Shown here: positions 33,601-36,600 of the stretch, one piece after another
Numbering within the stretch: position 1 is the stretch's first letter
Layout of the letters: each line of letters starts with the position of its first letter
Assembly: GCF_040938485.1 (NCBI RefSeq)
Contig: NW_027271004.1
Coordinates: 1,674,001-1,738,000 of the forward strand
DNA length: 64,000 bases
From: Diadema antillarum
Lineage: Eukaryota
Direction: 5' to 3'
Made by a program: the position numbers and the translations under genes
Notes under the pieces: model-generated
Seen by the model: the letters and a program-made list of their open reading frames with translations, nothing else
Told to the model about the DNA's origin: nothing
Databases searched by the model: none

Positions 33601-36600
33601 GACTCTTACTTTGATGGCAACATATTTTGTTGTATTTCTCAATCTGTAACTCTTGATTTTATAATAGTGAAAACTAAAGGGTTATCGTTGCTAGTGCAGT
33701 AGTTAGGCTGCATTTACACCATGTTCTCGGCAACCACGGCAGTCCCGTTTCAGGCCACCGTGGACAAAATGGGATGGGCTTGAAACAACATGGTGAGACG
33801 GGATTGGCAAACGCGAGAGGCCGTGAATGCTAGGATGCCATGTCACATTTTTAGACTGTCAAAAAATTTGCCACGGCAGTCCCGGTGCTAATGAGGAATC
33901 TTGTATGCAGTGATAAAACAGGGTGAATGCAACAAAATGGTGTGGCAGGTAATAGGCCGTAACAAAACTTGGAGGCTGTCAGCAGCAGGACGCGACTGAA
34001 AATATTGATAGTCTAGCCTGACCAGACGCCATGAAATCAGCGCCTGATAGCTACATGTTCACCGGGGTGAGGACTGGAATGAATAAGACCACTGTGCGAA
34101 GGGGGGAAAACAGTAGAATGTCTCACCTACCCACGGCGCAATATGTTACGGGCAAATGGGACCGCTGTGGCTGCCGGGGAACATAGTGTAAATGCAGCTT
34201 AAACCTGTTCATTGTAGTGGTGTTGTTTCTACTAATGTTTGGTTGTTTGATTGTGGCAGAGAGTACCATTTCTGGACTTGTTTCTTTATTGTTTACACAA
34301 AAGGAAGGCAAATTGATAGAGTAGGTGAGGTTTCCTAAAATATCTTCTCAGGCCTTGACAATGGAATTTGGGAGTTGTCTTTTGCCCCCTGAGGTGCATT
34401 TCACATGCAGGTACATGCATATTTGCCTGATTGCTCCTTGGAATTCCCTGATTGATGTGTAAGTGTTGGCAGTCCTGAGAATGTATCTACATGATTCCTT
34501 TCTCCCTTGCGCAGAATCAGACGAGTGGCACTGGCAGGCCATTGACGACTCTGTGACGTATCCCATGGTCCCCTCCAAGGAAGAGAGACGACTCCTATTG
34601 GCTAGTGATCTCTGCCTCACAGGAGAGGTATGCTCTGGACGTAGCGGCCTGAAAAAATGAGAATGATTTGAACTGAAATTACTTGTGCACCTCACACAGC
34701 TAATGTGTGTTCATAAGCGATTTCGAATATGATGATTTTTCTTCTTTATGTATTTGATTTATGAATTAGCACTGAAATGAATGCGAAGAATATATGCGGA
34801 GTTCCTTTAGGAAAGTATATTTATCCTGTCTAAATTTCAGCATTGTTTATATAACAACATTATACCATTTAGAAAATTCTGTGAATATGGAAATTTCACT
34901 GTTTGGTAAGTTTTGATGATGTTGATTTTTTTTATGTACATGTACATGTAATTTGTTTATGTGAATTAGTACCTTTATTAGTAGCATGTTTATTGTCAGC
35001 AAAATCAAGAACATAGAATTTGTCTTAGTGAACTAGGCACAAATAAATTTACACCTTTAGAGTAGTCTCATGCATGACATTACAGAAAGTCGGGAGAGGC
35101 TAATACTTACTGATATGCAGCATTTATTCTTTCCACTAGCTCAAACACACACATGATGATAATGAGTCATTTGTTTTATTTTTCTTTTCCCTTTTTGGTC
35201 ATCCTTTGCAGGCTATAACACATCTCCAAGCCACCAACCAGTCTTTCCTGAACACCATACTGCCAAAAGTCAAAGTGTTTGCCAGAGTTGCGCCAAAACA
35301 AAAGGTACAGTAAGTGATGTTATACAACGTCCAAGTAGATCCTTGTAATTTGATTGGAGGATTGTTGGTGACGTGATATTCAATAAGTACTCCATTCAAC
35401 GCGCCGTGCAATTTTGGTTCTATTTTTGCGTGCAACTTGGTTCTATTTTTTCGTTCTATTCCACTGTTCGAGAAATTGTACGGTACTGCGTGCAGCTAGC
35501 ACAGTGTACGTGTGCGGTACATGCATGCGCGTACGTAGGCCTACGTAGTGCTAGTGTACGTGTATGAGCGCTAGTGTAGCTGTGACCTGTATCCACACTG
35601 ATTGCGCAAGCCAGAAAGAGAATCGCAGTGGATCCACATGTAAGTATGGCTATATTTTTCATACATATAGCGACTTCTAGGCCTACTTAGACCAAAAAGA
35701 TCTACTTGGACGTTGTATAAATCAAATAGTGTATGGCCTTTACTCGTGCAATGGAACGAGATTTCGCACTCGGTGAAAGATGAGGCGCACTATTCAACTC
35801 GGCTTCGCCTCGTTGAATAGAGCGCCTCTATCTTTCACCTCGTGCGAAATCTCGTACCATTGCACTCGTGACCATTCACTATTTGTATACTATTGTATGA
35901 AGTTATCTGATTATATGCTTTCTGCATGGAATCACCCAGACAAGGAATTAATGCAAGCAAATGTTGAACTGAGATAAACACATTCATTGTTATCTTCTAG
36001 AGTGTGTTGCCACTGGAAGTATCATGTATGAATTCCGTGAAGGGTTTGATAATTCTGTATCAAAAGCAAATGAGTATATGACCAAAGTAGTTACCGGAAT
36101 TAGAGAGAAGTTTTTTCTGCACTTTATGAAATGTTAGCAGTGAACGATGGAAATTATGATAGAATGATACAAGGCATCATCCTGCAGAAATGTTTTTTTT
36201 TTTTTGACAAGATTGGTTAATACGTGGGTAGTTCATTTCTGCCTCACTTTTGGATGCAGATAAATGACATGATCTCTTTTCTAACAGGAGTATGTCATCA
36301 CCACCCTAAAGAGTCTAGGCTTCACCACCCTCATGTGTGGAGACGGAACCAATGATGTGGGTGCCCTCAAACATGCACACGTTGGTAAGTCTATGTGTAG
36401 TCTTTTTGCAGACTTTTATTCAAAATAGGTCAGTGGGTATGCGCTGTCACGTCATAACTTCGGTGACAGTGATGTTCTTTTTGTCTGTTCTCGTGGCACC
36501 TGCCCAGTTTTCAACTTGGACGATGCCAGCGGCTATCTGCAGTCATTCAAAATGTGTTGCACATTGCTGTTATAGGATGGAATTCAAAAACTGATATTCA

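Follow-up and report, generated by a model that had tools for sequence, protein, structure and literature searches.

A gene-less Crypton derivative of Diadema antillarum and its conserved 3' hairpin, with mismatches that hint at the use of a folded strand

In this study, we found that positions 35320-35889 of the window, the whole 64,000-nt stretch of Diadema antillarum DNA that was analysed, hold one copy of a very abundant, recently amplified and gene-less Crypton derivative. Comparison of the sequences showed that the long hairpin near its 3' end is a conserved cis module, in which the stems drift but stay paired and the TC/TC loops, their flanking bases and the C-TNC-G cap are kept. In the sequences compared, from sea urchins to a soft coral, it is nearly always the ORF-sense strand that bears these kept features. 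Such one-strand mismatches hint that Cryptons are handled as folded single-stranded DNA. No description of this structure was found in the literature searched.

Structure of the element and of its hairpin

The element opens with its 5' inverted repeat, followed by the body and an inverted copy of that 5' end, and closes with the long hairpin and TATA (Table 1). The long inverted repeat is terminal at one side and subterminal at the other; its perfect 22-nt arms lie at 35320-41 and 35699-720, as the original prediction had stated, and the true termini are inverted over 7 bp only (TATACAA). The predicted start at 15 nt after the donor agreed with our finding of the GT at 35305-06, and the copy lies 15 nt inside an intron. 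The hairpin had been taken to abut a separate 400-bp unit, but the two proved to be one element of 570 bp in 30/30 copies. A Stowaway or Tc1-mariner-type miniature element with terminal inverted repeats was rejected on account of the 7 bp that are inverted at the true ends and of the related autonomous elements, in which a recombinase is present and a DDE gene is not.

On a reading of the sequence with a presumed crossover, the element ends joined once would give TTGTATACAA, a perfect 10-bp palindrome. When the whole bottom strand was folded in silico, the subterminal copy paired with the 5' repeat, and both termini came to lie at one junction.

The hairpin is an imperfect palindrome with nested arms of 36 nt at 92%, 22 nt at 86% and 14 nt at 93%. 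Its computed folding energy as single-stranded DNA is -66.3 kcal/mol (z -15.6) for the + strand and -69.1 kcal/mol (z -18.2) for the - strand, a small strand gap of 2.8 kcal/mol, and 0/200 shuffles folded as well. Folding and the mismatch map bore out the predicted arms of ~80 bp with three TC/TC 2x2 loops, two A/A mismatches, one T/T mismatch and a GGC-TTC-GCC cap, and revised the predicted single bulge to two. The GA/GA loops do stand always in CGAG on the minus strand, as the TC lies in CTCG on the + strand in 6/6 cases. On the - strand, the apical module is a GCGAAGC mini-hairpin with tandem G.A on both flanks, and an identical copy of this 15-mer is present in an element of the starfish Patiria miniata.

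Table 1. Features of the element and its hairpin (positions in the window)
Feature	Position	Strand	Basis or remark
Whole gene-less Crypton-derived element, 570 bp, 5'-TTATACAACG...TTTGTATA-3', no ORF	35320..35889	+	30/30 copies with the same order
5' terminal inverted repeat, 22 nt perfect / 25 nt at 96%	35320..35344	+	Palindrome search, end alignments
Non-coding body	35345..35695	+	Short direct repeats at 35414-35454 and 35547-35583
Inverted copy of the 5' end, subterminal, immediately 5' of the hairpin ("splint")	35696..35720	+	Palindrome search
3' hairpin module, ~80-nt arms	35723..35885	+	Palindrome search, folding, mismatch map
T/T mismatch	35732/35876	+	Mismatch map
Bulges	TTT at 35739-41; T at 35829	+	Mismatch map
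TC/TC 2x2 loop 1	35744-45/35866-67	+	Mismatch map
TC/TC 2x2 loop 2	35770-71/35840-41	+	Mismatch map
TC/TC 2x2 loop 3	35799-800/35810-11	+	Mismatch map
A/A mismatches	35755/35856 and 35789/35821	+	Mismatch map
Apical module CTCG-GC-TTC-GC-CTCG	35798..35812	-	- strand reads CGAG-GC-GAA-GC-CGAG
Hairpin loop TTC, closed by GGC/GCC	35804-06	+	Mismatch map
3'-terminal TATA, candidate crossover core	35886..35889	+	Direct repeat of the TATA at 35321-35324

Copies in the genome and kinship with recombinase-encoding elements

A first look at the ~1.75-Gb D. antillarum genome gave ~2,209 candidate copies, and the 40 copies that were scored share 99-100% identity. The inverted repeat, body and hairpin keep a fixed order, distance and polarity in 30/30 fetched copies, with an element length of 554-794 bp as the body varies. 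In the contigs of three runs, the likeness ends before 35320 and after 35889. Differences between copies are mainly CpG transitions, too few to reveal a sparing of the loops, and one head-to-tail tandem of copies was present (L002). The palindrome at L061 (7338-7707) is an unrelated foldback-like repeat.

A sister family with 132 pattern matches has the hairpin in common from 35712 onward and a different upstream sequence, which indicates that the hairpin is a movable module as judged from these sequences. The same family would also fit two unrelated miniature elements, or a chance palindrome, lying side by side. We give this reading practically no chance: it was refuted by the order and distance of both parts, fixed in 30/30 copies, and by family boundaries that fall at 35320 and 35889 only, and the shuffles likewise speak against it.

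TATA stands at both ends in 30/30 copies. The bases outside it differ between copies (on the left ...T; on the right C/A/T, then TA); the 5' T is found in all 30, and ...GTATA is followed by C in 12 copies, by A in 10 and by T in 8. The original prediction had found no target-site duplication, and indeed no variable one was seen in the 30 copies, but a terminal signature does exist in the TATA of both ends. The crossover point at TATA and the lack of target duplication are putative readings. An all-against-all BLAST of 60 flanks against the available sequences gave no paralogue spanning an empty site, and no joint skipping 35320-35889 was found in the contigs of four runs aligned to the locus; the insertion is also present in another sample of the same species (X2).

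The PF12012 profile search of the genome gave 72 matches. The element L067 carries a 450-aa ORF with DUF3504 (42.5 bits) and Phage_integrase (28.0 bits), both above the cut-off. The window element aligns with its 5' end TTATAGAACGG, with the inverted copy that immediately precedes its hairpin, with its tip CTCGGCTGCGCCTCG and with its 3' end CATTTGTATA. The 5' end, subterminal copy, hairpin start, tip and 3' end can be aligned with L067 and L066, and L067, the closest recombinase element, has 9/11 terminal bases and ~60-70% of the end sequences in common with ours. The 5' repeat is homologous to the 5' ends of recombinase elements (TTATAsAACG ... AGATCCT ... TGATTGG), and in L071 a 25-nt terminal/subterminal inverted pair flanks the ORF. 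These recombinase-encoding elements with homologous ends are 2-2.6 kb long and have a single DUF3504/phage-integrase ORF, with the hairpin 200-600 nt downstream of it. The homology of its ends to such tyrosine-recombinase elements places our element among the derivatives of Cryptons of the DUF3504/phage-integrase type. Identical ends were found in none of the 12 fetched recombinase loci, BLAST with the element gave short chance matches only, and none of the 132 sister-family hairpins and 40 copies lies near the ~150 recombinase places listed.

The DUF3504 ("CryptonA"-type) lineage of Cryptons (Goodwin 2003; Kojima & Jurka 2011, PMC3212892) resembles our element in several points: the relatives whose ends are homologous code for one tyrosine recombinase, of the DUF3504/phage-integrase type, there is a short terminal direct repeat (here TATA, the same in all copies) with no classical target duplication, and sea urchins are known hosts. 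Published Cryptons, however, are without terminal inverted repeats or conserved structural features and usually have a low copy number (PMC3212892, PMC8969392, PMC13465315, PMC12130899), whereas here we observed a terminal/subterminal inverted pair, a strand-asymmetric hairpin of 140-190 nt and a gene-less derivative in thousands of copies.

Our first hypothesis was a non-autonomous Helentron of the HINE/Helitron2 type, moved as a rolling circle by the Rep-helicase-endonuclease Helentrons of this genome. The subterminal inverted repeats, with an inverted copy of the 5' repeat near the 3' end, the 3' stem-loop and the 5'-terminal T match the HINE scheme (PMC4067079, PMC8969392), and abundant gene-less derivatives are known there too (PMC4067079). 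The genome has >100 Helentron Rep matches with open frames of up to 3,804 aa, one copy (C138) encodes Rep, a PIF1 helicase and an AP-endonuclease domain, and the one head-to-tail tandem would also fit. Subterminal inverted repeats and a 3' palindrome are common to the HINE and Crypton layouts, so they do not discriminate. The ends of our element, however, are homologous to single-ORF tyrosine-recombinase elements in eight genomes, and the repeat and hairpin were seen in 0/30 Rep loci and the 10 kb downstream of them, a stretch past which the giant Helentrons extend, so that their termini lie outside. Instead of a constant T, any of C, A or T follows the 3' end, and the hairpin is ~10x longer than the HINE stem-loops, with a stem of ~80 bp and conserved mismatches against stems of 5-10 bp. 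The hypothesis was dropped, as no link to the ends was found and these ends are homologous to recombinase elements, and we consider it very improbable. Of the two partners once guessed for the element, HUH or Crypton-like, the evidence favours the Crypton-like one.

The hairpin in other species

Elements of this genome share the layout with elements of S. purpuratus, L. variegatus and D. setosum, and also with those of one starfish, one brittle star and one octocoral. A hairpin that follows the ORF on its 3' side and has TC/TC in the sense strand is present in S. purpuratus, Patiria, Amphiura, Dendronephthya together with an ENA assembly, L. variegatus and D. setosum (two families), and the inverted terminal/subterminal pairs of the elements of other species measure 37 nt (E 6e-13), 35 nt (E 4e-14) and 24 nt. 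The end motifs of the Diadema elements recur in elements of Patiria, Amphiura and S. purpuratus, and one D. setosum family (L084) has the same design without sequence likeness. The Mytilus locus, a spliced gene model, had no such hairpin.

The 11 hairpins have 28 2x2 loops, of which 24 are TC/TC when read on the ORF-sense strand and another 2 are TC/TT; the TC/TC loops have pyrimidine_purine flanks. Their spacings fall into groups of 19-21, 26-30 and 34-35 nt that several genera have in common, and in most families no local palindrome surrounds TC. Paired cells make up 92.7% of the apical alignment A3, versus 56.1% in shuffles and <=40.7% when slid; 18/20 pairs of the apical stem changed on both sides, and C17-G33 and C22-G28 are invariant. 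These data agreed with the suggestion that the loops would be conserved while the stems covary. The recurrence of the same loops and cap in hairpins of unrelated sequence from seven other genomes also supports the earlier view that the mismatches are non-random and that their G.A/GAA form is strand-specific.

Most loops of the 11 hairpins read C-GNA-G on the antisense strand, which is C-TNC-G on the sense strand. The antisense loop is GNA (GAA in six, GCA, GTA) or GATA (in one) in 9/11 aligned tips; of the remaining two tips, one has TTT, and the other, the flipped apex of L071, has its GAA on the ORF-sense strand. This opposite polarity of the apical module belongs to one decayed family (L071/L072). 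The tips of Amphiura and one octocoral are without a GNA loop, and a separately folded D. setosum family gave a second GCA loop. By nearest-neighbour energies the antisense strand is the more stable one in 11/11 hairpins, by a small gap of just 0.2-6.4 kcal/mol.

It may be asked whether the fold works in RNA, either as a hairpin of an antisense transcript (in regulation or small-RNA production) or as a sense 3'-end signal of the recombinase mRNA. Tandem G.A pairs are also found in RNA, and every autonomous copy has its hairpin within the 3' untranslated region of the recombinase ORF. Nevertheless, the hairpin is kept at the extreme end of gene-less copies in nearly the whole family, and it is tied to DNA-level features, that is, the terminal/subterminal inverted pair and the TATA termini. 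Moreover, GNA triloops, whose stability depends on a C-G closing pair, are a DNA motif (PMC3201870). We therefore regard a role in RNA as improbable.

Possible use of the folded bottom strand

The TC/TC loops, the pyrimidine_purine flanks and the C-TNC-G cap make chemical sense only on the bottom strand, which suggests that the folded bottom strand is most likely the one used. There, the loops would become sheared tandem G.A pairs in a Py-GA-Pu context, and the cap would become a C-GNA-G mini-hairpin loop. We think it somewhat better than an even chance that this is a gene-less Crypton derivative with a hairpin cis module, whose bottom strand is used in transposition either folded and single-stranded or as the arm of an extruded cruciform. 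Held side by side by the hairpin base and the internal 5'-end copy, the two termini would leave TATA as a 4-nt flap, at which the recombinase could exchange strands, and the circle junction of the joined ends would read ...TTTGTATA(T)TATACAAC.... We infer a single-stranded intermediate from these features. More tentatively, and with chances that we put well below even, animal Cryptons may transpose in general via a folded single strand, in which the G.A hairpin and the "splint" align the termini and the recombinase acts in the fashion of attC recombination.

Integron attC sites are a precedent for a tyrosine recombinase working on folded single strands, and there too the sequence of an imperfect palindrome drifts but the fold and a small number of unpaired features persist (PMC5027507, PMC4792948). 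The unpaired features of attC are strand-specific and define the strand used; those of our hairpin could likewise tell the recombinase which strand is bound. On the other hand, attC sites are bacterial, 55-140 nt long and marked by extrahelical bases and an unpaired spacer instead of tandem G.A, and the single-strand use that is proven for attC is inferred here; the comparison is functional and claims no homology. DIRS elements are also tyrosine-recombinase elements, with inverted terminal repeats and an internal stretch complementary to the joined termini (PMC13465315), but they replicate via RNA and a reverse transcriptase, which the present elements lack, and here the internal stretch is fused to the long hairpin.

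Several observations count against the use of a folded bottom strand. Canonical tyrosine recombinases work on duplex DNA, and covariation in an inverted repeat can be maintained at the duplex level. The opposite apical polarity of L071/L072, the small computed strand difference, and the Amphiura and octocoral tips noted above count against it as well, and so does the outcome at the loci examined, which yielded neither an autonomous copy with the ends of this family nor an empty site or polymorphic allele.

The same non-autonomous Crypton could instead be read in duplex form with no single-stranded stage, YTCR serving for protein contacts in the same direction, as directional marks in a recombinase-binding region that is symmetric apart from them, or as a brake on extrusion and deletion of the palindrome. 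Known tyrosine recombinases mostly use duplex sites whose core is asymmetric (PMC3212892), joining of the ends would make the duplex palindrome described above, the clustered TC/TC spacings common to several genera fit a protein footprint, and the apex can be flipped in one family. This reading leaves unexplained, however, the choice of TC/TC, the pyrimidine_purine flanks and a C-TNC-G in which N is free, while the kept features are the exact rules for stable G.A and GNA structures on the opposite strand (PMC13037366, PMC3201870). Any mismatch would suffice to block extrusion, and the mostly non-palindromic surroundings of TC speak against it too. We judge it unlikely, though deserving of real weight.

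Current guides treat Cryptons as being without recognisable end structures, which makes gene-less copies almost impossible to classify (PMC8969392, PMC12130899). The conserved layout (inverted 5' end, YTCR/YTCR hairpin, C-TNC-G cap and TATA termini) provides an annotation signature for Crypton-derived repeats in echinoderm and cnidarian genomes, and it supplies a defined candidate recombination site. Our results also indicate that Cryptons can spawn thousands of young copies inside genes. If the folded-strand route is true, it would be the first single-strand transposition by a tyrosine recombinase in eukaryotes and would explain the rise of a gene-less Crypton to thousands of copies.

The layout further supplies a testable hypothesis of bottom-strand folding, with either attC-like recognition or priming at the mini-hairpin. 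In the latter use of the fold, the second strand would be primed there, as at the single-stranded origins of phages and plasmids. GCGNAGC, GCGNNAGC and CCGAAGG are stable DNA mini-hairpins (PMC13037366), and GCGNAGC/CCGAAGG of the single-strand origins of phage G4 and ssiA (PMC13037366) are like the antisense caps found here. In phages and plasmids, they mark primase start sites on single-stranded DNA, whereas such a role in a eukaryotic transposon is a candidate one. The antisense cap is GCGAAGC in the window element, CCGAAGG in L. variegatus and the octocoral, and GCGATAGC in S. purpuratus.

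The hairpin and its element

A palindrome search located a long imperfect palindrome at the hairpin site, which as single-stranded DNA folded at -66.3 kcal/mol on the + strand (z -15.6) and at -69.1 kcal/mol on the - strand (z -18.2), with none of 200 shuffles matching in either case. A mismatch map, built from the family consensus and the raw window sequence, showed three symmetric 2x2 loops, all TC opposite TC in CTCG, two A/A and one T/T mismatch, two bulges, and a TTC loop with GGC/GCC as its closing stem. Read from the - strand, the loops become CGAG/CGAG and the cap GCGAAGC. 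The original prediction, with GA/GA loops and GCGAAGC on the - strand, agreed with this map, except that it counted a single bulge.

Within 35737-35861, nearly all differences between copies were CpG transitions (C>T or G>A), and the commonest two, 35758 G>A and 35853 C>T, lie on opposite sides of one base pair. Another palindrome in the window, near-perfect, about 150 bp long and flanked by the direct repeat ATGAGAAACCTC, was ruled out as a case of this design, being without CTCG loops.

Searching the species' own genome (~1.75 Gb) for the hairpin family returned some 2,209 first-look candidates, and the 40 that were scored had 99-100% identity across all 167 bases. In 30 of 30 fetched loci, an inverted copy of TATACAACGTCCAAGTAGATC precedes the hairpin and a forward copy lies 550-800 bp upstream. 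Likeness in the contigs of three sequencing runs stops exactly before 35320 and after 35889, and we therefore consider this stretch to be one unit; the hairpin had been thought to adjoin a separate 400-bp unit, which is not so in any of the 30 loci. The left flank of the copies is a constant T, while the right one is C, A or T, followed by TA. Hairpin polarity was identical in all 30 copies, in contrast to the ends of parvoviruses, which flip-flop.

A sister non-coding family of about 1 kb (132 pattern matches) has the hairpin in common from 35712 on, including the 9 nt before it, but differs upstream (...GTTCGAGGT), and some of its copies stand in tandem exactly 997 bp apart (e.g. G000:C16:3456778 and 3457775). 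Head-to-tail copies were also seen at locus L002 (G000:C202), where ...TTTGTATA is directly followed by TTATACAACG..., and one contig of run X3 held a 35887->35320 joint with 8 other letters between the 3' and 5' ends.

The element sits 15 nt into an intron, past a P-type-ATPase-like exon (31 aa without a Pfam match). The same insertion occurs on a second contig (L013) with flanks 98-99% identical, which makes it a haplotig or a recent duplicate. Words of the element (window 35291-35938) are very abundant in runs X3 and X7, labelled as two other organisms, in which the unique intron flanks are absent and only neighbouring exons are found. The family is therefore common to related species. No empty site was found when 60 flanks were compared with the fetched sequences, or in the contigs of four runs.

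Coordinates of the element and related features
Feature	Location	Detail
Whole unit	window 35320-35889	5'-TTATACAACG...TTTGTATA-3'; TATA at either end
Hairpin (long imperfect palindrome)	window 35723-35885	
CpG differences among copies	window 35758, 35765, 35786, 35806, 35823, 35841, 35853	
Upstream exon and intron start, up to the element	window 35212-35320	
Other palindrome	window 55429-55635	
Second contig, same insertion (L013)	G000:C36:1923413-1926579	
Helentron copy examined (L061)	G000:C138:1573508-1586999	
Recombinase locus L071	G000:C9:4654505-4657924	
Recombinase locus L072	C227:832220-835639	
Recombinase array	G000:C104:750907-756490	
Extra hairpins near the octocoral-type Crypton	L081 643-780, 1286-1412; L082 537-654	

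Crypton relatives in this and other genomes

The layout of the element, with a 5' repeat, a subterminal inverted copy and a 3' palindrome, was first read as a non-autonomous Helentron, and it matches the published scheme for such elements (PMC4067079). The genome has more than 100 matches to Helentron (Helitron-like) Rep, whose uninterrupted frames span 3,381-3,804 aa (e.g. loci L042 and L061), and the copy examined carries Rep and an adjacent 669-aa ORF with PIF1 helicase and an AP-endonuclease domain. This reading was dropped, as the ends of our element align to the recombinase locus L067. The ends were absent from 30 Rep loci and from 10 kb downstream of one, the termini of the very large Helentrons lying beyond the fetched DNA. 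Helentron copies keep close to 100% identity over more than 5 kb beyond the ORF. Several are found on a single contig at distances of 36-43 kb, an arrangement that resembles giant tandem units.

A PF12012 profile search of the same genome returned 72 matches. Kojima and Jurka tied this domain, DUF3504, to Cryptons (PMC3212892). Six fetched recombinase loci carry, a few hundred bases downstream of the ORF, a long hairpin that combines CTCG/CTCG loops with a 3-nt loop. The closest relative, L067, encodes 450 aa with DUF3504 and Phage_integrase, both above cut-off. Its 5' end (TTATAGAACGG), the inverted copy of this end directly preceding the hairpin, its tip (CTCGGCTGCGCCTCG) and its 3' end (CATTTGTATA) can all be aligned to the window element. 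L071 is framed likewise, its ORF being flanked by a terminal/subterminal pair of 25 nt. The alignment to L067 favours the Crypton-like partner that had been guessed beside an HUH one, and an autonomous partner with identical ends was not found among 12 fetched recombinase loci. At one site, three 529-aa recombinase ORFs are spaced 2,592 bp apart as a head-to-tail array of whole Cryptons.

The best public match of the L067 protein, 96% identical, is from Diadema setosum, which marks the genome of the window as closely related to that species. When the DNA around eight L067-related genes was examined, the same design was found on the ORF-sense strand in Strongylocentrotus purpuratus, Lytechinus variegatus, D. 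setosum (two families), the starfish Patiria miniata, whose 15-nt tip is identical to that of the window, the brittle star Amphiura filiformis, and the octocoral Dendronephthya gigantea with a second assembly; in a Mytilus gene model no hairpin of this kind was found. The ORFs lie between terminal and subterminal inverted copies of 37, 35 and 24 nt, which have the motifs TTATA..., AGATCCT and ATTTGAT in common with the 5' end of the window element. Taken together, the data show that Cryptons, and with them the gene-less derivative in the window, have the hairpin as their conserved end module. Published Cryptons are described as lacking terminal inverted repeats, with direct repeats of 4-6 bp only, no conserved structural features and generally low copy number, and no Crypton hairpin is mentioned in these four papers (PMC3212892, PMC8969392, PMC13465315, PMC12130899). 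More hairpins of this design, in either orientation, lie near the octocoral-type Crypton (ENA assembly ERZ25067879), where gene-less derivatives seem to be common too.

Strand asymmetry and its possible role

In the minimum-energy folds of 11 hairpins, 24 of the 28 2x2 loops were TC/TC and 2 more TC/TT, and 24 of these 26 had a pyrimidine 5' and a purine 3'. The antisense loop was C-GNA-G (GAA six times, GCA, GTA) or, once, C-GATA-G in 9 of 11 aligned tips, the others being TTT and a flipped apex in L071 with GAA on the ORF-sense strand. The GNA loop is missing from the tip in Amphiura and from one of the octocoral tips, and a D. setosum family folded separately gave a second GCA loop. In the apical alignment of the 11 modules, 92.7% of cells were paired, against 56.1% when shuffled and at most 40.7% when slid; both sides change in 18 of 20 pairs, and the pairs closing the TC/TC loop and the triloop are invariant. 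Loop spacings of 26 and then 29-30 nt are the same in the window and S. purpuratus elements.

In a Py-GA-Pu context, tandem G.A pairs adopt a stable, sheared form. Mini-hairpins of exceptional stability are formed by GCGNAGC, GCGNNAGC and CCGAAGG (PMC13037366), and the d(GNA) loop depends on closure by a C-G pair (PMC3201870). All three conserved features agree with these rules, and the sense-strand reading of the same letters gives destabilising loops only. Computed stability favoured the antisense strand in 11 of 11 hairpins by just 0.2-6.4 kcal/mol, and standard models miss mini-hairpin stability (PMC13037366).

A possible explanation is that the asymmetry is read in the duplex only. We propose that the hairpin would instead work as a bottom-strand fold. 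The closest model for such a mode of action is the attC site of integrons, at which a tyrosine recombinase reads unpaired features of the folded bottom strand and not its sequence (PMC5027507, PMC4792948). In the predicted fold of the whole bottom strand, a 4-nt TATA flap, the hairpin, a 2-nt linker and the stem of the two inverted copies meet at one junction, bringing both termini side by side. Ends joined via one TATA would form TTGTATACAA, a perfect palindrome of the type bound by tyrosine recombinases. By analogy with single-strand origins, the mini-hairpin might also prime the complementary strand (PMC13037366).

L071 and L072 are decayed, with stops relative to L067, and carry the apex CGAG-TC-GAA-GA-CGAG on the ORF-sense strand above a basal loop of usual polarity. 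This apex looks like an inversion inside the palindrome, or possibly arose by a template switch there.
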